64,000 nucleotides of DNA from Mizuhopecten yessoensis (GCF_002113885.1 NW_018408154.1:906929-970928), one strand, 5' to 3'. Counted from the first letter of the stretch, positions 37,115 through 63,969 are shown. A program made the numbers and translations. The notes: generated from the sequence alone by a model not told the origin.

Positions 37115-37852
37115 GCAGAAAAATGTATGACGAAATATTTATAAAAACAAGATAAAAATATACGATAAAAGGGTGATGGCATCATGTTTTAGTGATGTAC
37201 TCAAAACAGATAAAAAGAATCAACCGTTTCACAATTAAGGACATGAACATATCCTTAAGCGATATAGAGAAATTATATATATATACAAACGAATATTTTC
37301 AATGTGATGGTTATCGATCCATGCCTTACATGTACATCGAATGACTTGTACTTTGTCCAAACACAAACGACGAAGTTCTTTTTTTAGTTTCAGTATATAT
37401 TACGATTCTATGAACAAATGGAACTAAAGCTATCACCGAGGAGTTGACAACGTAAAATCAATAATACAAATGTCATTCTCTGCAGAGAAGGGTTGGGCTA
37501 TCTCAATTTTCAATTTAGCGCTCTCGTTAGAGCACATTTCCCACCATTTTCTTGCTGAAGAAAGAGGATGTGTGATCAGTCACAAACATGTTTTTTTGTT
37601 TTTTGTTTTTTAATAATGATTTTATTTTCAAAAGAGGTTTTTCAATACAGTGACAATAATAATGGATCAGTAATTCATTCAGATCATATAATAATCTATT
37701 TGTCACCATTCATCTTTCCTATCGCCAATCATACCATACAAATTATGCAAAAAGAAATTTGTATCACTATAGACTGCATATGGATAGGTATTATTTCACA
37801 ATCTTCCTTATTTATAAACTCAATTATATATTCTTTCTTGTCATACAGTATA

Positions 37853-38393
37853 ATATTGCATGCAAAGACATACATTATCACAAATGTTGCAACCATATTA
37901 TTTTACCCCCCGCAACGAAGTGGTTTTTTTGAGAGGGGGTCGATATTATACATCCTTTAGTTCATAGGCTTATTCAAAACACCGAGAATAATGTGATCAG
38001 GATATTTTAATAAAACGATGCGGAACGGGCAGAAATTTCCGGAATCGGCAGAAATGAGACACATAACAAATTGTAATGCATATATAATCGTAAAGATTGG
38101 GCCAAAAGAGAAAAGTTGGCACCTCTGCATGGTACTGCCACTACACAAATTTTTTTTCTAAGAAATCTATTGAAGAAAAAGCAAATGCATAGCCGGACAA
38201 ATTTATACGTAAAGGGACGTTTTTCTCTTAAAAAGGTCAGAAACGACGAATAATTTCAGGGGGCATAATTACATATGGTACTGCCATTACACTTAAAGAT
38301 TCAAAGACAGGGGGGGGGGGGGGGGGGGGGGGAAGGGATGATTAATAATATGGTTGCAACATTTTGGATAATGTATGTCTATGCATGCAATAT
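37853..38393. mobile_element. Element bounded by inverted repeats of about 50 bp
   Basis: atattgcatgcaaagacatacattatcacaaatgttgcaaccatattatt (37853-37902) is the near reverse complement of 38344-38393. Confidence 0.75.
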
Positions 38394-38819
38394 CAAGTTC
38401 ATACAGAAAGTAGTGGAAGGCCTTACGCTTATTTTTCTTAAATCAGAAATAATTTCCCCCAACAAAGGTAGATTTTTTTGTTTTCTTTTGTTAAGAATTG
38501 CCGCTGTATGACAAGGAAGAATATATAATTGAGTTTATAAATAAGGAAGATCTTCTGTCACTATCTTATTGTTAGATATGCCGTAAACGTTAAGAGAACT
38601 CTTGACAGTGGACATTGTAAGTATACATTTTACTGCACAGAACATTATGATTATTATGATTAAGAACCAAGTTATGTCATAAATATGAAATGAATGCATA
38701 CTTTTTATTTGTCTTGTGCAACTTAATAACAATAATAATAAATCCTGTGTTGACTTTCACAACTGATTTAACATATAAAAATCCATTTTTTCTGTGTTTT
38801 AGAAAAGTCTGATAAGAAC

Positions 38820-40544
38820 ATGGCGTGGTTAAACGTTTTGCAGTCTGTATTCATGCTTCCGTTCATGGCGGGTTACGCGAAGGCAGGACGGAATCGACCT
38901 ACCCATCTTGATGGGACAACCTCTGTTATTGTCTTCAGCACATTCCTCTTCTCCTTCATTCTTCTGATTGCGAAAACAATGACAGGTACTAACGAAACTG
39001 TATTTCATTGTCGCGGATTCCATGTAATTTTGTCCAGTATTGCCTTTATTGGCGTGCTTTCCTATATTATACTGATCATTACTCTCAGACTCAAGGGCTT
39101 CAGCAGCTTATTGGAACAACGAACCGCACGTAGCACTTCTGGTGTCCATATCATCTTCCTCTGGATGTTTGGGGTTGCATCCGTCGTCTTTTGTATACTG
39201 AATACAGGCCGGCTGATAGAATGTGAACTTTCGCTGGAGTCCAATGTCGTTTCAGATGTTAATCTGATGGAATGTGCTTATTATGTAGCCATGGCGCTGT
39301 TCCTCTTAATACAGATGATGGTACTGACCTATCTGATGCCTTTTAAGTTTAGAAGCTCTTTGCGACTTCAATACTTGATTCTGATAATCATATCCACAAA
39401 TTTATCGATGTGTGCTTACAGTTTTAGAGATCGTTACCTCGGAGATATGTATGTAGGTAATGGCACATGGATTGTTCTCAATTGCACAAATCAAACATTT
39501 TCACAAATGCTTGATGTTTCTAACAAAGTCCTCACTCCAACGTTTTTGGAATGTTCCTTCCTATCGATAACAATTATTATGAACATGTCATCTAAATGGA
39601 ACACAGACAACACCATAAATGACAACAACGAACTAACCGTCGTTATTGCATCTAGTGACAGTGTATCAGATACTAATGTCGACAACCCCGTTTCTTTTGA
39701 ACGCAGGAGATCACAATTATCAGGCGAACATAACAACGACACTGAATACGATGACAACTCATCCGAATCTAATCCAAGGACACCCTTGTTGTCTAATTCC
39801 CAAGTATCCAGACGTGGATCAAACTCGGCTCCTGGTTGTCACACTGGCGTCAAACCTAACAAAGAACGTTTAAAGCCGCTGTTGTGGTACTACGCTAGCG
39901 TGTTGTTCTCCTGGATACTCGGCATCGCTGTTTTGATAGTTTACATAGTACAAATTACCAGTGAAAGCACCGACAGAGGTATGTTGAACGCTCGGGATGT
40001 GTGCGAGACACTTGCTTCATGTATGATGGCCGTATATGTACATGCAGGATTTTATCTCCTGTCAAAACACACTCGGCCAAAAGCTGACGTTGGCCCTGTT
40101 TCCGGAAGTGAATATATCTTCATTATATCATCGATCGGGGCACTATTTTCATGCGTTTTTAGCGTATTGAGTTTTATACACTTTGCTCCTACCTTCTATA
40201 AGGTGCATGTAGCGTCTCGTGTAATCATAGGAGTCATATCATACACACAGACCGTGTTTATTCTACATGCAAAACGCTGCAGAAGGAAACGCACGAATGA
40301 GAACATTTCGTCCCTTCGTTCAGTGATGTTGCTGCTCGTTATGTTCAATTTTGTTTTCTGGATTGTCGAAAGTTTTATTTATGGCGGATATTACAATGTG
40401 AAATATATGGAAAGAAAATACCTCGGTCCTGATTTGTGGAACATCCGAGTCGGCATATGTCATCCCCTCTATATGTACTTTAGTTTTACTTCAGCATTGG
40501 AAATGTACAACCTATTCCAACAATTCTCAGCTAAACAATTATAG
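38820..40544 (+). CDS. Otop: Otopetrin-like protein, paralog C (574 aa, more divergent)
   Basis: Same N-terminal RNRPxHLDGTTS motif and 12-TM layout; PTFLECS, YTQT, FNFVFW, CHPLYMYFSFTS; longer central loop. Confidence 0.78.
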   Translation: MAWLNVLQSVFMLPFMAGYAKAGRNRPTHLDGTTSVIVFSTFLFSFILLIAKTMTGTNETVFHCRGFHVILSSIAFIGVLSYIILIITLRLKGFSSLLEQRTARSTSGVHIIFLWMFGVASVVFCILNTGRLIECELSLESNVVSDVNLMECAYYVAMALFLLIQMMVLTYLMPFKFRSSLRLQYLILIIISTNLSMCAYSFRDRYLGDMYVGNGTWIVLNCTNQTFSQMLDVSNKVLTPTFLECSFLSITIIMNMSSKWNTDNTINDNNELTVVIASSDSVSDTNVDNPVSFERRRSQLSGEHNNDTEYDDNSSESNPRTPLLSNSQVSRRGSNSAPGCHTGVKPNKERLKPLLWYYASVLFSWILGIAVLIVYIVQITSESTDRGMLNARDVCETLASCMMAVYVHAGFYLLSKHTRPKADVGPVSGSEYIFIISSIGALFSCVFSVLSFIHFAPTFYKVHVASRVIIGVISYTQTVFILHAKRCRRKRTNENISSLRSVMLLLVMFNFVFWIVESFIYGGYYNVKYMERKYLGPDLWNIRVGICHPLYMYFSFTSALEMYNLFQQFSAKQL

Positions 40545-43748: not shown

Positions 43749-44507
43749 AACTAGAATTTTGTTTTTGTTCACAAAAACATATGTCTCCCCTTATTAGCCA
43801 ATAGATAAACTTCGGTATACAAAAAAAAACTAACAAAGGGCCATATCTCTTTACATAGGGGGGCACAAGACCCGAATTAAGAATGCGACACTCCTACTTT
43901 CCAAGATACATTAAAACTATAGCAAGTTTGTTCAACGTAGGTGAAATAACATGGAAGTGATGCCGTGGACAAACTTCGGTATTAAAAATAAACAAAGGAC
44001 CATAACTGTGTATACAGTGGAGCACGAGACCTAATTCCAGTGCACTGCACACCTTCTGTGGGTGATGCAGTTACACTTCAAGTTTGATTAAGATATCTTT
44101 AATGGTTTAGAAGTTATGCCGCGGACAAACTTCGGTATTACAAATAAACAAAGGGTCATAACTCTGTATATAGTGGGGCATAAAACCTGATTTAAGTGCG
44201 AGAGATTCCGCCTCCCCAAGATACATTTTGGTCAACTTAGATGTTATAACATGAATAATATGCTCCTGACTAACTTTGGTAAACGAATTAAACAAAGGGT
44301 CATTACTCTGTATACAGTGAAGCACAACCTAATTCCAGTGCACTGCACACCTTCTGTGGGTGATGCAGGTGTAGTTCAAGTTTCATCAAGATATCTTTAA
44401 CGGTTTAAAAGTTATGGCCCGGACAAGTTGCGATAAGAAGAACCAGAAGAAGAAGAACCAGTACTAATACAATATGTCTCCCTTCATTCGAAGGGGAGAC
44501 ATAATTA
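43749..44507. mobile_element. Second Helentron/HINE-like element
   Basis: Subterminal atgtctcccc at 43781, internal repeats containing ggacaaacttcggtatt / aacaaagggtcataactct, (gaa)n tract, terminal hairpin atgtctccc...gggagacat at 44474-44502. Confidence 0.75.
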
Positions 44508-44550
44508 ACACTCCTTACACCTTTCAATCCGGCGTTGATAGAGGCTTCTA

Positions 44551-44758
44551 TTACCAACAGTCTATTTGTTCCTGTAAACTTTGGGGGAGTCTGACATTAC
44601 AAAAGTCGTCATTCCAGAAGTTTTCAGGAAGATCTGAAGATGGCACGATTTCTTCGTCGGAGATTAATCTCACTGTACAGTTTCTAAGAAGGGTTTCCAA
44701 ATCAAACGGTGCCTGCTTTTTTGAAACAGCGTCGTTACTCATTACCCCGTCATATGCT
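44551..44758 (-). CDS. Terminal coding exon of the ANKRD31-like gene
   Basis: tttctag|A acceptor; ends ...VRLISDEEIVPSSDLPENFW...IDCW*. Confidence 0.82.
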
Positions 44759-47700
44759 CTAGAAATAGAAGAAAGATAATTGTAAACATTTTTAATTTTA
44801 AATTTATATATATATTAATGCAAAAGTTATTACAAAATATTTTATCCTCTTGTTTTTTCCCTTTTTTCTACAATTTAGAATAAAAAAAGATTTCTGTTAG
44901 CTGTAAGAGAAAACAAAGTGCTGACAGAATTCAAAAATACTTCAAGGAATAAGTTTTTGAATCCTGCGTTTGTAACTATATTGTTTCCTCCAAATGTCCT
45001 CACCTTCATGATAAACTTCACCAGAATACTCAAAACAGTCAATTATTTATCACCTAACAAAATCCCTGAAGCTATTCAGTAGATGCAAATTCTGATATAA
45101 TCTGTTTTCTTGCTTTGTTTTTGTTTGTTTCTGTGATAGTAAAAGAGATACATTAATATGAATAGAGAAACCCAGCTGAACCGATTGGTGCCTAATTGAA
45201 TTGTAACTTTGTTATAGCAATAACCAGACGAGATAGAACTGCGCACTTCTTCGTGTTAGGAGCTCACCTGTTACTCTCTGGTTCCTCGTTAGCCTTGGTC
45301 AAATCTGCGATATATAATCAAAGCAGGATTCTTGATACGTGAAGCAATCAACCATGAATAGTTGTACAAATTTGCTTAAATACTTCCGTTATATATCAGA
45401 TCAGTATGTATTATTCATCAAAACACTATCACTGATAAAACGAAGAAAGCAAATAAAGTTTCATTGTAGTTCTGAAATGTTCGAAAGTAAAACCAAATCC
45501 AGTCGGTTGTCTATTTCTTTTTTCGTATCGGGATTTTTTTTTTAAATATTTATTTTGAATTGTCGCATCAACGTTTGATATCTACTTCTTCATAGAAAGT
45601 AACAACATTTGGAATACTTAAGTAATGTAACATACATAACGCTTGACATAGATTAAATATGACTTAATTAGAACAAGATTACATACCTATTACAGACGTA
45701 GGACCTGGATTGACAAAGGTCAGCAGTGGTTGACCATGATAGAAAACCTAGCAAACAACAATTTATAGCACTATATCAACAAACTCCAAATAATATAACA
45801 AAGTATTACATTTTTCTTGGCACTTCCAAAACACAAACATATTAATAAGTCAGACCTAAAAAAACTTAATTTCTAAGAAATTTACGCTCATCCATTATTA
45901 CATGTTTCAGCCCATAGAGTTCTGTTTTATGTTAGGATTGCATATGGGTTTATCTTAGATCATTATTGACTGACATGCTCTCTCGGATTTGTCAGGAAAC
46001 ACTTCGTAACACATCAACATCATGTATCACAAAGTGCGTGAACCGCTCACCCTAACACATGTATCACATAGTGCGTGAACCGCTCACCCTAACACATGTA
46101 TCACAAAGGGCGTGAACCGCTCACCCTAACACATGTATCACATAGTGCGTGAACCGCTCACCCTCACTCATGTAACACATAGTGCGTGAACCGCTCACCC
46201 TAACACATGTATCACAAAGTGCGTGAACCGCTCCCCCTCACTCATGTAACACATGTATCACAAAGGGCGTGACCCGCTCACCCTAACACATGTATCACAT
46301 AGTGCGTGAACCGCTCACCTTAACACATGTAACACATAGTCCGTGAACCGCTCACCCTAACACATGTATCACATAGTGCGTGAACCGCTAACCCTAACAC
46401 ATGTATCATATAGTGCGTGAACCGCTCACCCTAACACATGAATCACATAGTGCGTGAACCGCTCACCATAACATGTATCACATAGTGCGTTAACGGCTCA
46501 CCCTAACACATGTATCACATAGTGCGTGACCGCTCACCCTAACACATGTAACACATAGTGCGTGAACCTCTCACCCTAACACATGTAACACATAGTGCGT
46601 GAACCGCTCCCCCTAACACATGTATCACATAGTGCGTGAACCGCTCACCCTAACACATGTATCATATAATGCGTGAACCGCTAACCCTAACACATGTATC
46701 ACATAGTGCGTGAACGCTCACCCTAACACATGTAACACATAGTGCGTGAACCGCTAACCCTATCAGAGCATCTGGATATGAATTTAAATATTTAAATTAT
46801 CGCAGAATGACGTAAACCGCAAACAGGCCTTAGATCCCAGTAGGGGGTCGACAATGACGAGTACTATCCGTATTTTCTCATCTCCTGCATGGGAAAATTT
46901 TCGGAGCAAAAGTACAGAAAATGCGTTAGAAGTGTTTGGTATATTGATGCTTACCTTCCCCCTAGTCTTTAAAACTCTGGAGGAACGGAATGTAAACTGT
47001 ACGAGGAAAGATAGTCAAGAGGATTCACCACAGATGATATGTTTATAAAATGAAAATACCCCGTACCTCTCTGTAAGCTCGACTCTTTTTCACCAGTACG
47101 CCATCATTGACAGCGGAGACCCACTGGACAGGGGTTTTAAACACTTCACCTCCATGTCCTCTTATCAACCCAGAGTGCAAAAGGCTCCCGATGTACCGAC
47201 CATTCTTCTAAAATGAATAAATAAATATTCAATAAATAAATAATCAACATACTTATCAATACGAGGAAACACAAAGTTAACAGACAGTGAACGTATTCTT
47301 TCCTATTGGTAACAGCCTAGTTAGTAACCACGCAAAATCACGACAACAAAAAAGATCATGAAATTAGAATTGTGTGACTCAGGAAAAGTTGAAACGTATA
47401 GAAATTCGAACATGTCTCCTAAGTTTTGAATTTTGTAGCATACAAATGACCATTTCACCCGAATTTTTAGCAATAAATTACACATGATATTTTACGAATA
47501 CACCCAGATCTCCATTATCTATAACAAATAGTTTACCAATATTTCCTTATCTTTAGCATGTGCTGCACATAATTGATTGATACACAATCGTCTGTAATTT
47601 ACAGATAAACTCTAGTCTGTAGTATTGTACCATACACGATTTAGACCTAATATTTACCATTTAATCACATAAACATACAGAAATGTACCAATACACTATT

Positions 47701-50700
47701 ATCTGTATTAATTAACAAATCACTATTTAACAAAATTCCGTATTTTTTTATCATTTTACAACACATTATTACCAACACTTACATGTTATTGCTTATGTCC
47801 AACACTGTTCTGTATGAGGTTAGTCCTTGTAAACAATAACAACACTGTTCTGTATTAGGTTAGTCCTTGTAAACAATAACAAGACACACACTGTACCTTA
47901 GATTCTGTGACAAGGCAATCATTTTCAGGCACGAGAGCACCGCGCTCTATCAGAGTTCTAAGAGGTGGATATTTTGTCTGTACCGGAATGCTGCCATTCT
48001 GATCAGACTGCTCCTGTGTAGTATCATAAACTGACTTTGATTTATTCAAAGTGTACAAAAAAGACGACACATACATAAATACATGCAGTTACAGTGAACA
48101 TTATTGTTGTTACTTTTTTAACGGCTCTTCAACACATAAGAGATCAGTAGGGCAAATAAATGGTCGATTAAATTAGTTACAGTAAATGGCATCAGACAAA
48201 CGATCAAGTATATCAAGAGTGGCTATGATTAGTTGCATCTTTTGATTAGACCAACAGTTTTCAGGTAATCTAGGATTATAGAGATATTTGCTTTTGTTAA
48301 AAAAGAGATTTGATAGATTATAAGAAAGGTTTTTCGTGCTGGCTGAAGGTCGATGCAATCTAATAATGATAAGTGTTTTGCTTTAAATGGTTCGTGACAA
48401 GCTATGCATTGATGCTGGTCATCGGGTTTCAATAAATAAGAATGGGTCATGTATAAATGTCCCTTCCCAATACGGGCAGGGCCAACCTCGTCAGGGCGGC
48501 CTTTTCTATAGCTAATAACCATTCTCCAACTACAGGTTTTATAAAGGAGGTTACCTTTCCGAACAGTCCAAGACACAACAAAAAGTCACAAGGCAAATTT
48601 ACCTCACTTACCCGGAACTCCTCCGCTGTTGTCCTTTGATCCTCTTCGATATGTTTGGTGTAAGGACCAATATGAGGCTTTAACACCGGAACAGGAACTT
48701 CGCATTCAATCTCCATCTTCTGACTTTCAGCTAAAAGTCGTCTTTGTTGTATTCTTCTATTGATTTCCGATGATTTGACTGGAAACACGTCGCTACACGA
48801 TGCAGTACTTGGTGATATGTTATCAACATCAGTGGTGTTCGGCAGAGGTGGAGATTTGAACATAGGACCGTGTGACATAATTTGATGCTGAGATGGAGGT
48901 GGGGAACTGGAATTTATAACAGAAGTGTTTGATTGTGGTTTTCTTAATGGCGGAGGAACTAAAATGACCTTGAGCTTTCCAGAGGTTTGCTTGATACCTT
49001 GATCTGGAGCGTTGGTCTTTGTATACAAGGTACGAATGTTTGGATAATTAACAGTCCGTGAAAATGTTTCTTTTGACGTCATATTCGGCAGTACATTTTT
49101 TGGCGTTCCATTGCAATCGAAGTGCTGAAATTAAAGATCAGATAATTAAAATATTGAATTATGTGTTGTCCATTACCAAACGCCAGCACTTCGCAAAAGG
49201 AAAAGTAAAAACAATAATTTATACATTATTTTATTATGTGTGATGCAAAATTTGTTGGAAAGAATGAGGAAAGATGGGTATTTTGAAACATACAGGCCAT
49301 TACACTCCAATACCTCCTACCTTTCAATGAGTTGTCTCCCGTTTTCTCTGTTCAAGATTCAAGATTTCTCTGTCATACCTAGGTTATGATTAAAAATAAT
49401 CTTCCCCTACCTTGAGCGTTTTATCTTACTCGAGGGTTGGAGATTTTTCTGTTATACCCTCAAGGTAGGGGATGACTATTTTTCTGCCGACCTATTATTT
49501 TAGCCACAACTCCAACGACAGTAACCTGCTTGTAAACAAAAACACATGTGGGGTATGAATATTGTCATTCGTTTTCGATGACGTCACAATTACCAGTGAC
49601 ACATATTAATGACGTCACAATTGAACACGTACTAATCGGCACGAGGCTATCCCCCCCCCCCCCCCCCCCCCTCCCTAAGGGGGTGACAAGCTGATCTTTC
49701 CAGGCTGAAACGGGAGACACAACTGTGAACGGTGAACTTTGTCACCCCCGTATAGTATGACAGATGACAGGCGTAAACAAACAATACTATTACGTCACGG
49801 AAACAATCAGACTTAACATCATAATCAGCTCTAGACGGGAGAAATCATGTTTAAATCAAGACAACAAAACAGATTACAGTTGCGTGTTGAAAAGTATTGC
49901 TTTTAAACTTTGTATTGAGAGGACGAAAGGAAAAATAATCATCCTCTACCTTAAGGGTGTAACAGAGATATCTCCTACCCTCGGGGTGATTATTTGGTTG
50001 TCTTACCCGAGACTCTGTCCTCGATGCCTCCTCCTCTACAGAACCCTACTGCTGTTGATAGCCCCTTGGGTTGGAGATGTCTCTTTCACATCCCCATGGT
50101 AGGGGGAGATTATAAAGTCCTGCACTACTGTTAATATAAACACAACTTTGTCACACTGATTGAAACATCCTTTTCACTAACCTGTCTATTCAATCCAGCC
50201 TTACTCATAGCAGTTAGCTTATGAGCTCGTGGAGAGGTCCCACCACGGTTAGAAACAGGAATAGGTCGGTTGTTCTGTGCTGGAGCAGGCCATTCCTCTA
50301 CATTGGCACTTGACTGTATTGTAAAACATTTCCCAACAAGATCACCTGGCTGTGCTGGAGTCTTAGACCTGGTCTCAACATGTGTACAGGACCCTAACGA
50401 AGATCTTTCTTCAATACAGGTACTTGGCTGTTCCGGGTCAAACGAATTAATCATTGAGGTCGTAATCGTTTTCTGACGAGGATGGGTTTGAATTACACTT
50501 GTTTTTTGTTGAAAAAAGGAGGATTCGACAAACGGGTTTGCCGAGACTGTACCAGTGCCGCCCTGTCTCGGCACCGGTCTTTCTACACTGCCATTTTCTA
50601 TCAAGGAACTATTGGCGAAGCTCTTTGTCGGCAGCGACATCTTTTCCGTGTTTTGGTTCACAGGAATGTTACTGGTATAACTAAGTAGCAAACTTTGTGA

Positions 50701-53636
50701 GCATGATTCTGAGGTCAGACGAGACGATCTAGATGACTGTGTGTCCTGCACGCGCTTTTCCTTAGAGTTCGGTGGAGTAACTGTCATCTGGCTTGACCCA
50801 GTTTTTTGGCTCGCTTGATGATTAAGGTTCTGTGACAAACTCGTGGTTGTAGTCTGATATCCTGAACCATCATTTCTTTGTTCGATATCTTTTATTCTGG
50901 AACTCAGCGTCTTTTGCCTTTGGACCAGTTGGATCAGCTGTTTTTGTCGTTTTCCGAGTTGTTCGATCTCGCGCTTGTGTCGGAACCTATCCTGTTTTGT
51001 TTTGGAAGTGGACCGTACGTCGGCGGTCAAGCGGTGTCTGTAACACTTGTGCTGGTTGCTAAGCTGTCGCAACAGTGATTGAAGTGTGTCCATGTGTTGC
51101 TTTATTTTTTCAACGTCTGAAAATGAAAAGACAAATAATAGCGTTGAAGCTTTGGTAAATAAACGTTTTTATTTACTTTAACTTATAAGCTTGATTTAAT
51201 GAGAGGTTAACATGAAATAAACGTTCTAATAAAATCATTTATGCTATCAAAGTAAAATCACATCTCATAAATAATCATATTTTAAAATGCAGCTAATTGA
51301 TTATGAATATTTAATGACAACATAGATCTATTGTTTTCGATGTTCTTGCACAATGGACTAAAAGAAATACTAGTACCCGGATACTCGCGCTGTTATTGTT
51401 CAGTAAGTTAACTTAGGTAATAATGAGATACATTTCCTTATTTCTCCACGTCAATAGTTTCATAAAACACTTTGGTGAACGCCATGAAGCTTACCTCCTT
51501 GAAGACTCGATTTGCGCAGTTGTTTGTCAACATAGTCTTGCTGCTTGACGATCCTTTTGAATATCACTTCCTCTCGGTCATGCTTATCATTGAACAAACA
51601 GTCAAGAGGTTGAACATAATATTCGGGTTTTTCCAGGGGTATTTTTAGAATGTAATTACAAATTTTATTACTAGCATATATCTAGTCTAACCCAACCGCT
51701 TACTAACCACAGTTTAATGTAACATAGTCATCATCCAGGAACAAATTAACCCAAAACTTCAAAATACAGCGGTAATATATATCTGAATAAACATATTTGG
51801 GAACTATATACCCCAGTGTCAACACTAAGGGAACTATATACCCAGTGTCAACATACAAGGGAACTATAAACCCCAGTGTCAACATACAAGGGAACTATAT
51901 ACCCCAGTGTCAACATACAAGGAAACTATATACCCCAGTGTCAACATACAACGGAACAATAAACCCCAGTGTATTTGGTGTTTCCACTGTGATGTGCTAT
52001 TGTATTGGGTGTTTCCACTGTGATGAGTTGTTGTATTGGGTGTTTCCACTGTGATGTGTTATTGTATTGGGTGTTTCCACTGTGATGAGTTGTTTTATTG
52101 GGTGTTTCCACTGTGATGTGTTGTTGTATTGGGTGTTTCCACTGTGATGTGCTATTGTATTGGGTGTTTCCACTGTGATGAGTTGTTTTATTGGGTGTTT
52201 CCACTGTGATGNNNNNNNNNNNNNNNNNNNNNNNNNNNNNNNNNNNNNNNNNNNNNNNNNNNNNNNNNNNNNNNNNNNNNNNNNNNNNNNNNNNNNNNNN
52301 NNNNNNNNNNNNNNNNNNNNNNNNNNNNNNNNNNNNNNNNNNNNNNNNNNNNNNNNNNNNNNNNNNNNNNNNNNNNNNNNNNNNNNNNNNNNNNNNNNNN
52401 NNNNNNNNNNNNNNNNNNNNNNNNNNNNNNNNNNNNNNNNNNNNNNNNNNNNNNNNNNNNNNNNNNNNNNNNNNNNNNNNNNNGGTAAATGGGTAAGCAT
52501 TTTAAAATCTTGTGTAAATCCTCATATCTTGGCTAACTCAGGAAACGAGTACCTTAATAAAGTTCAAGGAAATTGCAAAAATGTGTTTTGGAAAGATGTG
52601 TTTAGGGCATGGTATAAATTAAGAGCAAAAGAGGAGCTGTTTAAAAATGAGAATTTTGCCCTACTTAAGACACCCTTATGGTATAACAAAAATATTTCTG
52701 TTGGTAATAAAGTTGTTTTTTATAGTAAGTGGTTTAAAAACGGGATTATGATAATTAATGATTTGTTGAAAAACAACACAGACTACTCTTTCTTGTCTTT
52801 TAAGGAATTTTGTGATCTACATGGTACAATAACTAATTATCTAGAATATCATGGCTTGATAACAAGCATAAAGAATTATCTGAAACAACTTAATTTGCCA
52901 AACAAAAATGTGATATACCCAATTATACCGTTACATCTTGTAATAATTTTAAAGAAGAAAAAAGGTTCTCAAGACTTCTATAATATACTTATCAGAAATA
53001 ATGCATCAATAACTGCTCAAACAAAATGGGGAACTATATTCGACTATAATCAGGAAACTTGGGGGAAAATATATGCTATTCCTTTCAGGGTTACAAAAAA
53101 TACAAAATTGCAATGGTTGCAATTTAGAATTAATCATTATATTTTAACAACCAATTCTTATTTATGCAAAATTGGACTTGTAAATAACCCACACTGTGTT
53201 TTTTGTATCATAGAAAGGGAGACAATTACCCACGTTTTATGGGAATGCAGGGAAGTACAAAAATTTCTGAGCAATTTTGAAAGTCTTTTAAGTGCTCTCA
53301 CTATTCCTTTCTCACTAAATAAAGAATCAATGATCTTTGGTTTTATCAACCAAACTGGAATTTATACCAGAATTGATAATGAAATTACTCTGTTCATTAA
53401 ACAATATATATACAAAACCAGATGTTTTCATAAGTCACTTAATGTGACGGCTTTAGTCAATTCGATTAAAGATTACTATAAGGTTCAGAAATATATTGCT
53501 CGTGGTAAAGGGGAACAAGGCCTTAGAAGATTTACTTCTGAATGGGAAAAATGGTTAAAATTAGTAGAGCTTGACCTCAACTAACCCTGAGTATTATGAC
53601 TATTTATATTAAGTTATTAGTTGTTATTCTACTTTA

Positions 53637-53673
<37 letters not shown>

Positions 53674-56600
53674 GCTCTTTGTCCATTTGTTTTGTCTATT
53701 CTATGTGTGAAAGTGTGTGAAAATTGAATGTGTCTTGGTGATTGTATAAAATCAGCATCAGATGATGAGGATGATGAGGAGGATGAGGTTGCTGATAATT
53801 TCAATAGTAGATATGTGTGAATGTGTGGATATGTGTTGATGTGATGTTCTGTATAATGTACATGTTCTGAAAATGTTTGAAAATAAAAAAATTAAATTAA
53901 AAAAATAAATAAAAATGAATCAAGTGTGAACACAAAAGAATAAACTATACAAGAGTGTCAACACATACTGACAAAACATGTACAACAGGGTCAATACACA
54001 TACTGACATAACATGTACAACATGGTCAATACACATACTGACATAACATGTACAACAGGTTCAATACACATACTGACATAACATGTACAACAGGTTCAAT
54101 ACACATACTGACATAACATGTACAACATGGTCAATACACATACTGACATAACATGTAAAACAGGGTCAATACACATACTGACATAACACGTACAACAGGG
54201 TCAATACACATACTGACATAGCATGTACAACAGGGTCAATACACATACTGACATAACATGTACAACAAGGTCAATACACATACTGACATAACATGTACAA
54301 CAATGTCAATACACACACTGACATAACATGTACAACAAGGTCAATACACACGGGAAAATATAGGTACAACACTAAAAACTCGATGAAAATAAAGAATTAA
54401 AAATGGCGTGAAGGCGTATCTGACTTTTTTAGCATTTGCTTTCATTTCGGATTTATTTCAGATCTTCTTTTATGGTGATTCATACTTAGGTTTTCTTCCA
54501 TACATCAATTGTACCATTCTTTTCATAGAACACTACTGTATGTCAAGCACACTGAACGATGGCGGAATCCGTTATGTCGAAGTTGTTTAATACATAGCCT
54601 GCTAAAGGAGATCATAAAAGCGTTTCGAGGTAGGGGAAGATGTATTCTGGGACGTATTTTTACGGGAAAGTGTTGATTGCGTAGCGACGGCTGCTTACCT
54701 CTACTGCAGGGCTACTGTCGTGTGGTGATATGGTTGACTGACTTTCATGTCCTTTTTGCGGCGCAAATATTTGTTTTTCCTCTTTGTCATCTGCAGAAGA
54801 TAGGTGTAGTATACAAAACCTGTATGTTTATATATATTTATATATATATATATATATACAATGTATATATAGACATGCAAAAAAACAAGATGGATAGTCG
54901 GCACTTGGACGTATGCTTTACGCGAACTATAGACGCGATATTTAGTACAAAGTACTTAACATGTACATTGCAAAAAACTAGTATGTCATATAATTGATCT
55001 ATTACTAGTGAATTGTATGGTGGCTTATAAATGACATTTCGTCGTTTCGCTTTGTCGCCCGCGAAATAACGCCAAGCGAAATAAAGAAATAATGAAAAGA
55101 CGAAAACCCGCCAAAGCGAAATAACGAAATAACCCCACACCGTGTGAAAATAACGCCAGAGCAGAAATGCTGCACACAAAAAAACAGATAATTTCAAAGC
55201 TTTAATATTTCCTTGTGTGTTGTGTTTACTGATTGATGAACTAGTATATTAAACATGTGCAGAGGAAAGTAGTGAAGTCACACGGAAGAAAACTTGTAAA
55301 TCGTGTTGTTTTCATCCATGACGGGTAACATTGTGGCATATCCTACTCTGTTCGTCCCTTTACTTGTCCGTGTACCAGGAAATGGCTTCCCTACATTTAT
55401 TAACATATAAAGCTGTATTCAAATTATTACATAAATATATATCCCGACTTTATTTGTGCTGTAGGATTGCTATGACAAAATGGGGTATTCTGTCCTGTTA
55501 TATAGAGACAGTTTCCTTGTTCATTCTCTTTATACGAAGTTTATTTATCTATTAAGAGCATTACTTCATAGCTATTCGTATATAGGTAAGGAAGGCAGAG
55601 TGAACACGACTTGAACCTATTGTTTAAAAAGTTATAACTGTTTGTTTTATGTCCAGAACATAACTTCCTTGCTATTCACCAGACATGTGATACATGTATC
55701 TTGAGAAAACCAGTTGTTGTATACTAACATTTTGTCACGCCTCCCCCCCCCNNNNNNNNNNNNNNNNNNNNNNNNNNNCCCCCCCCTCTTTATACAGAAT
55801 TATAGCCCGTTGTTGTTTTTAAATCTTCAAAGTTTTTGTAAATATGGGCAAAGGGAGGCAATCCATGCCATATGCAGAGTTTTTTGATACATTTTATACA
55901 GGAAAGCATCAGAGCCAGTCAGATAGACTATTACGTCTGAGACTTTGTTAAGAACTTGAGTCTAAAATGAAAGTAAAACATGCGATGGGCGTGTATGATG
56001 CAATCATAACGTCATCAACAGTTCTACTAAGTCGAACCTTACCTAAAACATCCAGTGTGTCAATACGCTGGCATTTCCCAGGCAACTCTCCAGTCATTGA
56101 CTGCTCATGACATGAACCCAGTTTCCTGCCTCTCGTGTTGTTATTTCCCGAGCTCCGAGTGCTAGTTGCGTGATACACTTTGTCCTGTTCACTGTCAAAT
56201 TCTCCGGAATTCTGGGGACTCCCGGCATGTGCCCTTTTAGCCTGATCATCGGAGCTTGAATGTGATACCTTGGTCGCCTGAATGTGCCCCTCTCTTGAGC
56301 TCTGCGTGGCACTCGCGTGGAAGGCTTTGGATGATGGCCTACCAACCTCTTCTGAGCTGGGAGTGCTCCTCGGCTTGAAAGTTTTGGCAGCGGAATCAAG
56401 AATTTCTCTTGAGCTCCGAGTGCTTCTCGAGTGGATTTCTCCTGAGCTTTGAGAGCTATACGGGCGGCACATTTTGGCTTGAGGACTATTAGACTTCACA
56501 AAGCGGTCCTCTTGGTCCACTGATTCAAACACCTTTGTACCAACTCCATCACCAAAGGACAGACCAGGGCTATGAGTATACAAGTTAGGCGAGATACGGT

Positions 56601-59600
56601 TTACAGGGGACACAATAGAATCCTGACAATCTGGTCGTACAAATTGGATGGGTAATGTTCCACTGTGGTCACAAGAACTCTGGGTATCATCAAAAAGTAG
56701 CTGGGACGCCTGGTCCTCTGATACAGATTTAGGATTATTGATATGCTGTGTTTGTCGAAGTAATGACTCCGACATTACTGAATCGTCGTCCGAATCTTCC
56801 GCGACCGAATGGTCCACCTACAACAAACCTAGGACATTAGTAACGTTATATATATATATATATATCCTGTAGTATAACCACCAGAATAAGACCAGTAAAT
56901 AGACAAACATATTTTTTATATTTTAGACCACGATTAAATAATGGGAACCTTAACAATGCTTATAGAGAAATGGCAGTCCAAGCACAGATTTATGTGAAGC
57001 CCTAAAATAGCATTAGCGCAGTAGATGAACAAGAAATGCCATGGTTGGTCTAAAGGAAAGTGTGAATCACAGAATATATTAATTAACGTGTGAAAATGTA
57101 CTCAAATATCCTACCTTACGAGACCATGTTGATGTCTGTACGGGCAACACAGGGGATAGTGTTTTATCTGAAAAAGACAACAGTACTCGATATGAGGAAT
57201 AAAACGGTTACTAACATACATAGTAGTTACATATGCTTATACGGTTATTTTAAATATCAAAATCCAAAATTTAACGAACATTTGTAGAAATTTATAATAA
57301 ACATTAAAAGAAAAAAGAAAAAATGCAAATATTCAAAAAATTACATTCACAACCGTCGGCTAATCAGACTGACGAATCAGGCGCTGTCGTTTTGTACACC
57401 TCACTTGTATAGGGTTGAACATTGCTTTGTTCTAGATCATTTGCGGGATGGTTCGAGTTACTCTCAAGACTTTAAATGAAACAGTTTTGCAGAGTTTGTC
57501 TCGGGACCAAATCCATACCTCGCCCCCATGAGCGTGAACATGACAAGATTCCGCATTACATTAACCAAATCCATTGATTATCCTGTCTGTGACACTACGA
57601 GCTTACCTGTGATATCCGTTTGAAGAACTCTTTTATTTTCTAGCCTAAAACAAACAAAAGTACGATCAGGAATCACAAAGCAATATGTTATTGATATTAA
57701 TGAACTGAAACAGCAGGTGATATTAGACCATATCTTGATCAGAGTGAAGACGTTTACTTGCCATAACACAGCGTGACGTACTATCAGATTAAGACATTTT
57801 CTCTACCAAATCGCGATATGTAGCTGTTATTTGTTTACAATTTGATATCTCGTGCCAATTTACATAAAGTGTTTAACAGATCATTAACACCACAACAGAA
57901 AAACAAGGCTTGACAGTTCAAATAGTCAACAGTTATAATACACAATGTATAGAATACACAGCAGATTGTCTCGTGTAACGTCAAGGTACTGTAGCTGATC
58001 GCGTCGTGGTAAGGCCGCCATCTTTGAACGGTCACTTAATACATGAGATTTGTGTTAGATGCGAGACATTCACCTCGTTTTAGAATGATCTTAATGTCCT
58101 GTAAAGTCAATACGTCGTCTATGATTATATTATTGTCAGTTGATTACCTTGTATCCGGTACTCAAGTGGTTGTCGTCATTACTCTATATGATTTGTATGT
58201 ACTTACAGCGAAAAATGGCTGTTAATTTGTGCGTTCTCATAGAGCGTAAAATGTTAATCAAATTGTGAGTTCTCGTGGTTTAAAACGCCAGTTAATTTGT
58301 ATGTATTCATGGTTAAAACCATACCTCAAAGTTATTACTGAAGTACTCTTCGTTTTTTTATTAGAAACTTTAAGAGACAATTACAAGTGGATATTGCTAT
58401 GTTTACTGGTAAAATTTTAAAACTATTTACGGTTGTTGCGTAAAGACTCAGTAACAAAGGAGTTGTTCACGGCCAAGTTGGCTACAATTTCACTGTCTGT
58501 TGCTCGCATATTTATTTAGATTTAACCTGATTAAACGCGCTGTATTGCTAAGCACTTAGTGTTAAAGGATAGACAGTGTGAGAATGTTCTACCTGTACAC
58601 AAAGTTGTTTAGTGATAAATCTGAATAATAAACCCGTGTCTTTAAGAACATTCGACGTATACCGGACATATTACTGAAGAGAGATCTGTTAAAAACCTGA
58701 AAGATTCCGGAATTAAAACAAAGAACCGACCAAAGAAAACGGTCAAACTCCTGTTTCACCCGAGATCACTCACGAGATAGGGTAACGTATTGCTTCTTAT
58801 ACCAGTATACTTACTTACACTCACCGTGTTAAAAGTCATAACACTCTGTCACTAGTAATCACAACGTTAGGTAACTAATTGTTACTGATATCTCTGTGTT
58901 GCTAGTAATCACAACGTTAGGTAACTAATTGTTACTGATATCTCTGTGTTGCTAGTAATCACAACGTTAGGTAACTAATTGTTACTGATATCTCTGTGTT
59001 GCTAGTAATCACAACGTTAGGTAACTAATTGTTACTGATATCTCTGTGTTGCTAGTAATCACAACGTTAGGTAACTAATTGTTACTGATATCTCTGTGTT
59101 GCTAGTAATCACAACGTTAGGTAACTAATTGTTACTGATATCTCTGTGTTGCTAGTAATCACAACGTTAGGTAACTAATTGTTACTGATATCTCTGTGTT
59201 GCTAGTAATCACAACGTTAGGTAACTCATTGTTACTGATATCTCTGTGTTACTAGTAATCACAACGTTAGGTTATTTACTGTTATCCCTGTGTCACTAGT
59301 AATCACACCGTTAGGTAACTAATTGTTACTGATATCCCAGTGTTACTAGTAATCACAAGGTTAGGTAACTAGCTGTTACTGATATCTCTGTGTTACTAGT
59401 AATCACAACGTTAGGTAACTAATTGTTACTGATATCCCTGTGTTACTAGTAATCACAACGTTAGGTAACTAACTGTTACTGATATCCCAGTGTTACTAGT
59501 AATCACAACGTTAGGTAACTAATTGTTACTGATATATCTGTGTTACTAGTAATCACCACGTTAGGTAACTAATTGTTACTGATATCCCAGTGTTACTAGT

Positions 59601-62600
59601 ACCCACAACGTTAGGTAACTAGCTGTTACTGATATCCCTGTGTTGCTAGTAATCACAACGTTAGGTAACTAATTGTTACTGATATCCCTGTGTTACTAGT
59701 AATCACAACGTTAGGTAACTAATTGTTACTGATATCTCTGTGTTACTAGTAATCACAACGTTAGGTAACTAATTGTTACTGATATATCTGTGTTACTAGT
59801 AATCACAACGTTAGGTAACTAATTGTTACTGATATCTCTGTGTGACTAGTAATCACAACGTTAGGTAACTAACTGTTACTGATATCTCTGTGTTACTAGT
59901 AATCACAATGTTAGGTTATTTACTGTTACTGATATCCCAGTGTTACTAGTACCCACAACGTTAGGTAACTAACTGTTACTGATATCCCAGTGTTACTAGT
60001 ACTCACAACGTTAGGTAACTAACTGTTACTGATACCCCTGTGTTACTAGTACTCACAACGTTAGGTAAATAATTGTTACTGATATCTCTGTGTTACTAGT
60101 ACTCACAACGTTAGGTTAATAATTGTTACTGATACCCCTGTGTTACTAGCACTCACAACGTTAGGTAACTTATTGTTACTGATATCCCTGTGTTATTAGT
60201 ACTCACAACGTTAAGTAACTTTCTATTACTGATATCCCAGTATTACTAGTACTCACAACGTTAGGTAACTCATTGTTACTGATATCTCTCTGTTACTAGT
60301 ACCCACAACGTTAGGTAACTAACTGTTACTGATATCCCTGTGTTACCAGTACCCACAACGTTAGGTAACTAACTGTTACTGATATCTCTGTGTTACTAGT
60401 AATCACAATGTAAGGTTATTTACTGTTACTGATATCCCTGTGTCACTAGTAATCACAACGTTAGGTAACTAACTGTTACTGATATATCTGTGTTACTAGT
60501 ACTCACAACGTTAGGTAACTAATTGTTACTGATATCTCTGTGTTACTAGTACCCACAACGTTAGGTAACTAACTGTTACTGATATCCCTGTGTTACCAGT
60601 ACTCACAACGTTAGGTAACTAACTGTTACTGATATCTCTGTGTTACTAGTAATCACAATGTTAGGTTATTTACTGTTACTGATATCCCTGTGTCACTAGT
60701 AATCACAACGTTAGGTAACTAACTGTTACTGATATCCCTGTGTTACTAGTACTCACAACGTTAGGTAACTAACTGTTACTGATATCTCTGTGTGACTAGT
60801 AATCACAACGTTAGGTAACTAATTGTTACTGATATTTCTGTGTTACTAGTAATCACAATGTTAGGTTATTTACTGTTACTGATATCCCTGTGTCACTAGT
60901 AATCACAACGCTAGTACCCATAACGTTAGGTAACTTACTGTTACTGATATCCCTGTGTTACTAGTACTCACAACGTTAGGTAACTAACTGTTACTGATAT
61001 CCCTGTGTTATTAGTACTCACAACGTTAGGTAACTTATTGTTACTGATATCTCTCTGTTACTAGTAATCACAATGTTAGGTTATTTACTATTACTGATAT
61101 CCCTGTGTCACTAGTAATCACAACGTTAGGTAACTAACTGTTACTGATATCCCTGTGTTACTAGTACCCACAACGTTAGGTAACTTATTATTACTGATAT
61201 CTGTTACTAGTACCCATAACGTTAGGTAACTTACTGTTACTGATATCCCTGTGTTACTAGTACCCACAACGTTAGGTAACTTATTATTACTGATATCTGG
61301 TACTAGTACCCATAACGTTAGGTAACTAACTGTTACTGATATCCCTGTGTTACTAGTACTCACAACGTTAGGTAACTTATTGTTACTGATATCTCTCTGT
61401 TCCTAGTACCCACAACGTTAGGTAACTAACTGTTACTGATATCTCTGTGTTACTAGTAATCACAACGTTAGGTAACTAATTTTTACTATTATCTCTGTGT
61501 TACTAGTAATTACAATGTTAGGTTATTTACTGTTATCCCTGTGTCACTAGTAATCACAACGTTAGGTAACTAACTGTTACTGATATCCCTGTGTTACTAG
61601 TACTCACAACGTTAGGCAACTTATTGTTACTGATATCTCTGTGTTACTAGTAATCACAACGTTAGGTAACTAATTGTTACTGATATCTCTCTGTTACTAG
61701 TAATCACAATGTTAGGTTATTTACTATTACTGATATCCCTGTGTCACTAGTACCCACAACGTTAGGTAACTAACTGTTACTGATACCCCTGTATTACTAG
61801 TACTCACAACGTTAGGTTACTAACTGTTACTGATATCCCTGTGTTACTAGTAATCACAACGTTAGGTAACCAATTGTTACTGATATCCCTGTGTTACTAG
61901 TAATCACAACGTTAGGTAACTAACTGTTACTGATGTCCCAGTGTTACTAGTAATCACAACGTTAGGTAACTTACTGTTACTGATATCCCTGTGTTCCTAG
62001 TACCCACAACGTTAGGTAACTTATTATTACTGATATCTGTAACTAGTACCCATAACGTTAGGTAACTAACTGTTACTGATATCTCTGTGTTACTAGTACT
62101 CACAACGTTAGGTAACTAACTGTTACTGATACCCCGGTGTTACTAGTACTCACAACGTAAGGTAAATAGCTGTTACTGAGAACTCTGTGTTACTAGTACT
62201 CACAACGTTAGGTAACTTATTGTTACTGATATCTCTGTGTTACTAGTAATCACAACGTTAGGTAACTAACTGTTACTGATACCCCAGTGTTACTAGTACT
62301 CACAACGTAAGGTAAATAACTGTTACTGAGAACTCTGTGTTACTAGTACTCACAACGTTAGGTAACTTATTGTTACTGATATCCATGTGTTACTAGTACT
62401 CACAACGTTAGATAACTCACTGTTACTGATATCCCTGTGTTACTAGTAATCACAACGTTAGGTAACTAACTGTTACTGATATACCAGTGTTATTAGTACT
62501 CACAACGTTAGGTAACTTATTGTTACTGATATCCCAGTGTTACTAGTTCTCACAACGTTAGGTAACTAACTGTTACTGATATCCCTGTGTTATTAGTACT

Positions 62601-63969
62601 CACAACGTTAGGTAACTTATTGTTACTGATATCTCTGTGTTACTAGTAATCATAACGTTAGGTAACTAACTGTTACTGATATCTCGGTGTTACTAGTAAT
62701 CATAACGTTAGTTACCTTACTGTTACTGATATCCCTGTGTCACTAGTAATCACAACGTTAGGTAACTAACTGTTACTGATACCCCTGTGTTACTAGTACT
62801 CACAACGTTAGGTAACTAACTGTTACTGATATCCCAGTGTTACTAGTAATCACAACGTTAGGTAACTAATTGTTACTGATATCTCTGTGTTACTAGTACT
62901 CACAACGTTAGGTAACTAACTGTTACTGATATCCCTGTGTTACTAGTACTCACAACGTTAGGTAACTAACTGTTACTGATATCCCAGTGTTACTAGTAAT
63001 CACAACGTTAGGTAACTAATTGTTACTGATATCTCTGTGTTACTAGTACTCACAACGTTAGGTAACTAACTGTTACTGATATCCCTGTGTTACTAGTACT
63101 CACAACGTTAGGTAGCTAACTGTTACTGATATCCCAGTGTTACTAGTACTCACAACGTTAGGTAAATAACTGTTACTGAGATCCCTGTGTTACTAGTACT
63201 CACAACGTTAGGTAAATAACTGTTACTGATATCTCTGTGTTACTAGTACCCATAACGTTAGTTACCTTATTGTTACTGATATCCCCATGTTAGTAGTACT
63301 GAAGCTTTATGTAACTTTCTATTACTGGTACACCTGCGTTTTTAATACCTACAACTTTAGGGAACCTACTATTCTCTTAACCTTTTGTACATAATACATT
63401 CCCAGCACACACACAGGCATACACACATAGGGAGATATTAGCCAGGTGGTAAAGGACTAGTAGTTAGCGCCTGATAAGGCAGCTCCTGCGAATTCCTCAA
63501 TATTGTATTGATTAATATATATGCTAATTTTAATGTCTGTATACAATTGTATATCTATGTACTGTAAAGCGCTTTAGAGTGGCGTATGTTCGCTATAAAG
63601 GGCGCAATATCAAATGTTGTATATTACTATTATTACTAAATGACAATCACAACTTTATTTAATTCGCTAATAATCATTATTAACTGCTACCGATTCACAC
63701 TCCTGCATCACCACCGGTTTGTGTATTGCCCCGTACTTCCTTCTTCGGCCACTGATGGCACCCAATTTTCCACTTCGATCCCCTGCACCGACCTAAATTC
63801 ATTCCCGTATGGTGACCTATACTTACATCCTTAGGCCGAGAAGCGACTTGTACGGTGACTTTAGATCACCAGTCTCGTCACTGTTCCTTGTGGTGTTAGT
63901 TACTATGGATACTGCATCGTCACATACTTCCGGAACTATGGAAACTCCGTCGCCATATGTCTCCGCCAT
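44551..63969 (-). CDS. ANKRD31: ANKRD31-like protein with C-terminal RAMA domain (multi-exon)
   Basis: Exons 63969-63827, 57644-57607, 57167-57115, 56817-56043, [unresolved junction], about 51670/51580-51495, 51116-50182, 49124-48612, 48013-47897, 47207-47067, 45747-45687, 45304-45268, 44758-44551. All resolved junctions are GT-AG and in phase. Coiled coil near 51590-50870, then RAMA domain, then LISDEE...FW tail. Confidence 0.7.
45687..48013 (-). CDS. Three exons encoding the RAMA domain
   Basis: Spliced peptide LRTLIERGALVPENDCLVTESK|KNGRYIGSLLHSGLIRGHGGEVFKTPVQWVSAV...AYRE|VFYHGQPL fits the RAMA pattern (L..L..G.L.P / LL..G.I / F.TP..W / V.Y.G..L). Confidence 0.8.
46021..46762. repeat. 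37-bp minisatellite, about 20 copies
   Basis: Unit catgtatcacatagtgcgtgaaccgctcaccctaaca. Confidence 0.95.
47800..47882. repeat. 40-bp direct duplication
   Basis: aacactgttctgtatKaggttagtccttgtaaacaataac occurs twice. Confidence 0.85.
48105..48565 (-). mobile_element. 3' fragment of an I/Nimb-group LINE (ORF2 C-terminal zinc knuckle plus tail)
   Basis: SYR..R.DEV..ARI..GH.YMTHSYLLK.DDQ.QCIAC.EP...KH..LDC.DL..AR...LDYLKTVGL, then a gttgaagagccgttaaa tail. Confidence 0.8.
48612..49124 (-). CDS. Pro/Ser-rich exon of the ANKRD31-like gene
   Basis: tttcag|CAC...CGG|gtaagt; 171 codons. Confidence 0.85.
49397..50113. mobile_element. Non-autonomous DNA element with nested inverted repeats
   Basis: Outer TIR ataatcttcccctacc / ggtagggggagattat; inner IR of about 54 bp at 49431-49484 versus 49929-49982. 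Confidence 0.75.
50182..51116 (-). CDS. Coiled-coil/Ser-Thr-rich exon of the ANKRD31-like gene
   Basis: ttttcag|AC...ACAG|gttagt; 935 nt open. Confidence 0.85.
51798..52211. repeat. Two abutting minisatellites of about 30 bp running into an assembly gap
   Basis: gggaactatataccccagtgtcaacatacaa, then gtattgggtgtttccactgtgatgWgYtRtt. Confidence 0.9.
52212..52483. other. Assembly gap (N run); a second small gap lies at 55752-55778
   Basis: N characters. Confidence 1.
52484..53915 (+). mobile_element. 3' end of an L1/Tx1-clade LINE (ORF2 with zf-RVT-type region, 3' UTR, A-rich tail)
   Basis: Open frame to 53584: FWKDVF.AW, PLWYN.NI, KLQWLQFRINHYILTTN, C..C...ET..H..W.C (CVFCIIERETITHVLWEC). 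(CT)n in the UTR and an A-rich tail at 53880-53915. Confidence 0.88.
53955..54351. repeat. 35-bp minisatellite, about 11 copies
   Basis: Unit gtcaatacacatactgacataacatgtacaacagg. Confidence 0.95.
56043..56817 (-). CDS. Large Ser-rich exon of the ANKRD31-like gene
   Basis: ttgtag|GTG...TTAG|gtaagg; 775 nt open; in phase with upstream exon 57167-57115. Confidence 0.8.
58842..63300. repeat. 50-bp satellite, about 89 copies
   Basis: Unit tctctgtgttactagtaatcacaacgttaggtaactaattgttactgata. Confidence 0.97.
63560..63638 (+). mobile_element. L2-type LINE/SINE 3' tail
   Basis: tgtaaagcgctttagag...ggcgcaatatcaaat...tattactattattacta. Confidence 0.55.

Follow-up and report, generated by a model that had tools for sequence, protein, structure and literature searches.

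Mouse ANKRD31 controls how many meiotic DNA breaks form, when and where, and all of its functions need its grip on REC114 (PMC10666023). It has 1857 amino acids (aa), with ankyrin triplets at 467-568 and 1167-1279, a coiled coil at 1340-1374, and two regions near its end, CR4 (1701-1787, 87 aa) and CR5 (1811-1857, up to the last residue), which had "no function assigned" under a Pfam release predating the RAMA model (10.1101/423293). Here we describe LOC110458601, a gene of the scallop Mizuhopecten yessoensis whose last five coding exons make up the stretch 44551-48013, on the minus strand of a 64,000-nucleotide piece of DNA (NW_018408154.1:906929-970928; "the window" means this whole piece). 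The stretch encodes the C-terminal 186 residues of this expressed, single-copy gene, and these contain a RAMA domain and, after it, a conserved tail. This tail is similar to the part of ANKRD31 that grips REC114, a likeness that falls short of proof.

In ANKRD31, CR5 wraps the PH domain of REC114 (PDB 6NXF). Binding is abolished by Y1818A/L1819A, E1831A or W1842A, while L1833 and Y1845 are contacts and a pocket holds the terminal W1857 (10.1101/425322). The ankyrin repeat domains form two triplets, with one in bony fish. The literature describes ANKRD31 as vertebrate-specific; its discoverers remarked that conservation of the REC114 surface it binds extends far outside vertebrates, and asked whether ANKRD31 might be older than it appears.

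As for the RAMA domain, those of MPND and CcrM contact the DNA backbone without base specificity, and that of MPND also binds histones and nucleosomes (PMC9963953). Iyer et al. described many eukaryotic RAMA architectures in chromatin proteins, with "RAMA plus ankyrin repeats" among them.

LOC110458601 is already annotated, though as uncharacterized. In the searchable literature there is no mention of this gene or of the motif ILLISDQEFLP, and nothing on ANKRD31 outside vertebrates. The idea that the gene is ANKRD31-like is new with respect to that literature.

Gene structure and transcription

We searched the 68 aa of the last exon against 1.84 billion proteins with phmmer, and found a 100% match to the extreme C-terminus of the 1068-aa XP_021366049.1. 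RefSeq names this protein "uncharacterized protein LOC110458601 isoform X2", and the automatic UniProt name of A0A210Q6D5 is "RAMA domain-containing protein". Translated search (tblastn) and exact protein mapping place 13 coding exons and the start codon (63969-63967) in the window, which thus holds the entire coding sequence. The features of the gene are as follows.

44551..63969, minus strand: whole coding span of LOC110458601 (tblastn and exact mapping)
63827..63969, minus strand: coding exon 1, aa 1-48 (protein mapping, splice sites)
57607..57644, minus strand: coding exon 2 (protein mapping, splice sites)
57115..57167, minus strand: coding exon 3 (protein mapping, splice sites)
56043..56817, minus strand: coding exon 4, Ser-rich, no Pfam domain (protein mapping, splice sites, Pfam)
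54699..54790, minus strand: coding exon 5 (protein mapping, splice sites)
51495..51582, minus strand: coding exon 6 (protein mapping, splice sites)
50182..51116, minus strand: coding exon 7, aa 397-708 (donor 50182 present in RNA contigs)
48603..49124, minus strand: coding exon 8, aa 709-882 (RNA contigs, RefSeq isoforms)
47897..48013, minus strand: coding exon 9, start of RAMA, aa 883-921 (RNA joints, RefSeq)
47067..47207, minus strand: coding exon 10, RAMA core (RNA joints, Pfam, RefSeq)
45687..45747, minus strand: coding exon 11, 61 nucleotides (nt), end of RAMA (RNA joints, RefSeq)
45268..45304, minus strand: coding exon 12, 37 nt, acidic linker (RNA joints, RefSeq)
44551..44758, minus strand: coding exon 13, linker, conserved tail and stop codon TAA at 44553-44551 (RNA joints, RefSeq)

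All 12 introns have GT..AG ends. Exons 9-13 join in frame, with phases 0, 0, 0, 1 and 2, and the translation of each is present letter for letter in RefSeq XP_021366048-50, the isoforms of 1066, 1068 and 1069 aa. Most of the protein is Ser-rich and, probably, disordered. The first ~80 residues of exon 7 are charged, heptad-rich and, judged by eye only, coiled-coil-like, and exon 8 encodes a conserved basic motif, INRRIQQRRLL.

Public sequencing runs were aligned to window positions 44300-50299. Contigs from three probable RNA runs of three studies (runs X1, X2 and X3) contain the joints 44758>45268, 45304>45687, 45747>47067, 47207>47897 and 48013>48603/48612. The upstream joint 49124>50182 is also found in RNA contigs, and the joints read CT..AC on the plus strand. 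As contigs without introns can only come from spliced RNA, LOC110458601 is transcribed. Across 14 likely RNA runs (four studies), a fraction of 0.22-0.34 of the sampled words of the stretch was present. The raw reads of one further RNA run, X19, include none on LOC110458601 exons, so expression is not ubiquitous. We conclude that the C-terminal exons are the real end of an expressed gene.

The isoforms are explained by small shifts at two splice sites. In exon 8 an alternative donor at 48612, in place of 48603, removes VSE and gives isoform X3. In exon 10 an alternative NAGNAG acceptor at 47204, in place of 47207, gives isoform X2. Both forms of each site are present in RNA contigs.

A 42-nt in-frame candidate exon with AG/GT flanks, 46996-46955 (minus strand), was considered and set aside as unused: the joint 45747>47067 skips it in runs X1-X3, and no RefSeq isoform contains it. 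In intron 7 (49300-49700 and 50007-50182) there are alternative joints at 49124>49321 (run X1) and 49124>50007 (run X3), which suggests that exon 8 is preceded by minor alternative exons or by retained pieces. The same intron carries a repeat with a coverage depth of up to 169.

RAMA domain and relation to MPND

Exon 10 alone matches the Pfam RAMA family PF18755 (E=0.0017). The full scallop protein scores 35.8 bits against this model over aa 883-974, where the cut-off is 35.2, and bivalve orthologues range from 31.5 to 50.7 bits and mostly exceed it. RAMA is the sole Pfam domain in the 1068-aa protein and in six orthologues.

In an AlphaFold2 (AF2) model of aa 870-1068, the predicted local distance difference test score (pLDDT) is above 90 throughout RAMA. 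The best PDB matches of this model in Foldseek are the RAMA domain of mouse MPND, 7ydw and 7ydt (E 2.5e-5, root mean square deviation 2.1 A), with template modelling (TM) scores of 0.73-0.76 normalised to the MPND chain and 25-26% identity over 86-89 columns. The next match is CcrM, 6pbd. Searching the PDB with the RAMA sequence gave no match; only the fold search succeeded. The C-terminal part of LOC110458601 therefore contains a RAMA domain (aa 883-981), whose fold is small and winged-helix-like. It is separated from the tail by an acidic linker of 35-36 aa.

A RAMA search of the scallop genome returned two loci, LOC110458601 itself, detected via its protein, and C4843:385490-388731. The second belongs to scallop MPND (C4843:385490-401202, plus strand), which has RAMA exons of 57.8 and 24.4 bits and, 12 kb downstream, a JAB exon of 23.1 bits. 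We thus rejected MPND as the identity of LOC110458601, since MPND is a separate, JAB-bearing locus and LOC110458601 has no JAB.

These results agree with much of what an earlier note had read from the DNA alone. It had assigned the locus to a probable lophotrochozoan, and the host is a scallop. It had described small exons mostly absent from the list of open reading frames (ORFs), and exons 11 and 12 are in fact short enough to escape that list; the boundary that it drew at 48013 is the true acceptor of exon 9. The spliced order that it proposed, RAMA and then a tail, is borne out by RNA joints, RefSeq and Pfam. The motif VRLISDEEIVP...FW, placed by it near the stop codon, lies at 44673-44641 and 44619-44614 (minus strand). 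Its expectation that a profile search would return RAMA was confirmed by the PF18755 score, just above the cut-off, and its statement that no JAMM/JAB domain lies downstream by Pfam, which finds RAMA alone.

The conserved C-terminal tail

The last 52 residues of the protein form its best-conserved region in bivalves. The relevant positions, all in exon 13, are given below.

44554..44709, minus strand: conserved 52-aa tail, aa 1017-1068 of XP_021366049.1 (33 phmmer hits and alignment)
44691-44686, minus strand: L1023/L1024
44661-44641, minus strand: S1033 to P1039 (SDEEIVP), with E1036 at 44652-44650
44619-44614, minus strand: F1047-W1048
44556-44554, minus strand: terminal W1068, the last codon before the stop

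The phmmer search gave 33 significant hits, of which 32 belong to the family and 31 were aligned. The hit outside the family is a 1095-aa metagenomic protein, apparently a repeat-driven false positive, in which seven repeated stretches were matched (E 2.6e-9) and which carries Pfam Spore_III_AB. The cluster of this protein consists of ENA metagenome contigs of ~3.5 kb.

The consensus of the 31 sequences reads L..LL..C.V.L..D....P..DLPENFWT.DF..V.LP..LW..VD.W, and in most hits its end is the C-terminus or lies 1-2 residues short of it. Tail positions P33, F36 and W37 never vary, and the terminal Trp hardly does. The tail is present in eight bivalves (Mizuhopecten, Argopecten, Pecten, Pinctada, Dreissena, Mytilus, Sinanodonta and Ruditapes), in the crinoids Antedon and Anneissia, and in the nemertean Tubulanus. 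It is single-copy in the scallop genome. Across bivalve orders, identity is 40-50% and up to 67% in the tail, 31-42% in RAMA and ~20% in most of the other protein. The scallop and crinoid proteins are 46% identical over 50 aa of tail and have nothing else in common.

In Sinanodonta, 240 aa separate RAMA and tail, and Pfam finds no RAMA in the crinoid and nemertean tail proteins or models. On the strength of these alignments, the tail is thus an autonomous module under strong constraint. ORFs upstream of the tail in two further assemblies contain no Pfam domain.

Folded alone from the 31 sequences, the tail reaches a pLDDT of 77 and a predicted TM score of 0.31; short helices form near LETLLR and near QSLQEQI. 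When AF2 models it together with RAMA, it has no confident docking on that domain (pLDDT 53-66). In these models, local structure without a global fold is as expected of a peptide that would fold on a partner. The tail has no match in Pfam or the PDB, none in Foldseek with the tail model, and no usable feature match in the Atlas.

Similarity to ANKRD31

The mouse sequence was taken from the E1831A repair oligonucleotide in the supplementary information of PMC10666023, which we translated by hand in the frame P1816-H-Y-L-Q1820. Mouse ANKRD31 1810-1848 then reads ESMQTIPHYLQIKEILQISKQELLPCHVMEQHWKFYVGR, consistent with the structure paper at each of the eleven residues that it names. The earlier note had quoted the mouse motif as ILLISDQEFLP; the donor oligonucleotide gives ...PHYLQIKEILQISKQELLPCHVMEQHWKFYVGR, and the mouse motif reads ILQISKQELLP. 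The quoted motif implied ~55% identity to mouse, and the actual identity of the mouse and scallop tails is ~15%. In PMC10666023, a 1-bp deletion at coding position 5484 is said to replace "the last 21 amino acids"; this position falls in codon 1828 of 1857, which leaves 29 residues.

We aligned the two tails by hand, without gaps and at one constant offset (mouse minus 795). The positions pair as I1815/L1020, Y1818/L1023, L1819/L1024, I1824/V1029, I1827/I1032, S1828/S1033, Q1830/E1035, E1831/E1036, L1832/I1037, L1833/V1038 and P1834/P1039, with S1828 and P1834 also identical in scallop. Further on, W1842 faces W1048 with one extra scallop residue, and W1857 faces W1068 with five more, so that the terminal Trp is six residues further from the Glu in scallop than in mouse. 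Almost every family member has Glu or Asp at the E1831 position. As sequence evidence the match is weak. It appears to be more than noise, since the matches fall in register on functionally important residues and the Glu position is acidic across the family.

As for the partner, scallop has a REC114 gene, whose C-terminal (MEI4-binding) exon scores 39.7 bits at C3184:527051-527182 (plus strand). Upstream at the same locus (C3184:525813-527182, plus strand), a candidate PH-domain exon with EEARRFRLQF recalls, by eye, R114/R117/Q119 of the terminal-Trp pocket in mouse; it found no support in Pfam or the PDB and was not used.

Taken together, LOC110458601 could well function in the manner of the ANKRD31 C-terminus. 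We infer DNA binding, a REC114 partner, a role in meiosis and common descent with ANKRD31. In the most likely mechanism, the protein would be a chromatin-anchored scaffold. RAMA would anchor it on DNA or nucleosomes, and the tail would fold onto a partner, for which the best candidate is the REC114 PH domain, gripped in the manner of CR5. The hydrophobic pair of the tail would then sit on one REC114 sheet, with the Glu directed to an Arg at the open end. Two short helices would bring one Trp into the REC114 groove and the terminal Trp into a pocket. The scallop gene would thus be an invertebrate counterpart of the CR4-CR5 end of ANKRD31, minus the ankyrin repeats. For REC114 binding together with common descent of the RAMA-tail module, we see the chances as evenly balanced.

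Alternative explanations

Several results weigh against kinship with ANKRD31. The authors of the structure built a hidden Markov model of the vertebrate tail and found nothing outside vertebrates (10.1101/425322). In our phmmer search, none of the source-named members of the 33 hits is a vertebrate protein or ANKRD31, and the reciprocal best match that the earlier note had expected is therefore missing. With a threshold as lax as E<=10, tails, sub-tails and two tail profiles searched against the PDB still missed the 6NXF chain of ANKRD31; as a short local match to profiles this long costs ~8-11 bits in HMMER, the blank with the profiles excludes strong but not weak similarity. Word-index searches for vertebrate ANKRD31 were also blank and carry little weight, since known bivalve orthologues were missed or the searches were limited by query length. 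The hand alignment has only 5 identities in 39 ungapped positions, and by hand calculation its best ungapped segment, ISKQELLP against ISDEEIVP, is worth ~14 bits, with a pairwise E of ~0.2. The most invariant motif of the family, LP(E/D)NFW, is VMEQHW in mouse. Furthermore, 46% identity between scallop and crinoid tails against ~15% to the vertebrate one would require a sharp acceleration.

The domain content adds to these points. Pfam finds no ankyrin repeats in the 1068-aa protein, and an ankyrin-consensus pattern found no ankyrin-like repeat on either strand of the window. Repeats further 5' were ruled out, as the gene starts inside the window and the adjoining 10 kb are satellite DNA. The crinoid and nemertean proteins have the tail without a detected RAMA. 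The RAMA identity of mouse CR4 is a presumption, with indirect support alone, from the size of CR4 and the "RAMA plus ankyrin repeats" architecture of Iyer et al., and no text in the searchable literature pairs ANKRD31 with "RAMA domain". By these data LOC110458601 lies outside the ANKRD31 family as defined, given that neither ankyrin repeats nor a detectable sequence relationship is present. The conservation of an ANKRD31-REC114 module, as the earlier note had put it, is thus a reasonable hypothesis and not a result: counterparts of the key tail residues and a REC114 gene are there, and ankyrin repeats and a sequence link are not.

An alternative is a lineage-restricted RAMA chromatin protein whose tail has a partner other than REC114, its likeness to CR5 being convergent or due to chance and meiosis not being required. 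We consider this quite possible, if short of probable. It would account for the failure of sequence searches to connect the tail and ANKRD31 in either direction, for the mouse protein having no LP(E/D)NFW, and for the missing ankyrin repeats; tails without RAMA in crinoids and the nemertean would mean that RAMA plus tail may be a bivalve combination, and the many RAMA architectures listed by Iyer et al. offer room for one more. It leaves unexplained why a RAMA-sized block, a short linker and a Trp-ended tail of ~50 aa reproduce the mouse CR4-CR5 layout, and why all five experimentally critical mouse features are matched in nearly the same register. Moreover, Pfam, PDB, Foldseek and Atlas suggest no alternative partner. 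The tail could also act within its own protein, folding back on RAMA to gate DNA binding, or serve as a localisation or degradation signal. Flanking acidic regions do regulate the RAMA of MPND (PMC9963953), and the scallop linker and tail are acidic. This second alternative seems improbable to us, as the model shows no confident docking of the tail on RAMA, the tail is kept in proteins without detectable RAMA and far from it in Sinanodonta, and invariant aromatics, with Trp as the last residue, are what a buried interface typically shows. Finally, chance ORF pieces or a decaying pseudogene could be proposed from the small size of exons 11 and 12 only. This has already been refuted: transcripts from three studies are spliced, the reading frames are intact, and bivalves of different orders have orthologues in which RAMA and tail are conserved.

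Implications

With LOC110458601 read as a REC114-binding scaffold, a wider proposal can be made. The core of ANKRD31, either RAMA with the REC114-clamping peptide or the peptide alone, would be ancestral in bilaterians and survive without ankyrin repeats in bivalves, nemerteans and crinoids. Ankyrin repeats would have been added on the vertebrate stem, and invertebrate break formation would use an ANKRD31-type REC114 scaffold. We consider this proposal plausible, but stop slightly short of expecting it to hold.

An invertebrate family with an ANKRD31-like C-terminal layout offers a concrete and cheap test of the age of ANKRD31. If the proposal is true, RAMA and tail are the ancestral parts and ankyrin repeats later additions; it would also tie the RAMA DNA-binding fold to the control of meiotic breaks and give a function to "uncharacterized" mollusc genes. 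If it is not true, the family remains a new, well-defined C-terminal motif whose partner is to be sought.

Repeats and other features around the gene

Several introns of LOC110458601 contain repeats. The one within the C-terminal stretch is listed here.

46016..46762, no strand assigned: 37-bp minisatellite, 20 copies, in intron 10

Most of intron 1 is a 4.4-kb satellite (58847-63298) with a 50-bp unit, a 150-bp higher-order period and 89 copies. A different long satellite, with a Leu/Pro/Gly-like open frame, takes up the 7 kb past the high-coordinate end of the window (C4827:973800-980900), on the 5' side of the gene. Directly 3' of the gene, at 43900-44510, there are at least two copies of a repeat (...gtatacagtggagcacgagacctaattccagtgcactgcacaccttctgtgggtgatgcag...) similar to a short interspersed element. 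This repeat has an RNA depth of 125-200 and many loose ends in all runs, X19 included, so contig ends near 44476 may be repeat breaks and not a poly(A) site.

Another intronic feature is a 474-aa open frame at 52160-53584 (plus strand), broken by an assembly gap (N run at ~52211-52500), which looks like the C-terminal part of ORF2 of a retrotransposon without long terminal repeats. Elsewhere in the window, 29224-40544 (plus strand) holds three tandem intronless ORFs of 530, 547 and 574 aa. They encode multi-pass membrane proteins and are unrelated to LOC110458601.

Comparison with known systems

In terms of known proteins, MPND (7ydt, 7ydw) shares the RAMA fold with LOC110458601. The order of domains is different: in MPND, RAMA is N-terminal and JAB comes after it, while in the scallop protein RAMA is C-terminal and followed by the conserved tail.

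ANKRD31 differs from the scallop protein in length and domains, with 1857 aa in mouse against 1068 aa without ankyrin repeats. There is no HMMER-detectable similarity between them, and identity in the aligned tails is ~15%. Compared with ANKRD31_C (aa 1808-1857), the scallop tail is 6 residues longer, and mouse does not have the LP(E/D)NFW hallmark. On the other hand, both proteins are long, fast-evolving and largely unstructured, with a coiled-coil-like stretch further upstream (by eye in scallop). Both have a conserved block of ~90 aa, a short linker and a tail of ~50 aa conserved to the terminal Trp; CR4 ends 23 aa before CR5 in mouse, and RAMA 35-36 aa before the tail in scallop. By the hand alignment, a hydrophobic pair, a Ser-x-x-Glu-hydrophobic-hydrophobic-Pro core and an internal Trp are also common to both, in near-equal register.

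Lastly, the REC114 PH domain binds one other peptide on the same face, that of TOPOVIBL. The C-terminal helix of mouse TOPOVIBL, which is short and amphipathic and has an essential Trp (W562), recalls the scallop tail in this. TOPOVIBL uses one helix, whereas the scallop tail is ~3 times longer, and its extra upstream elements are those that in ANKRD31 reach the other sheet.

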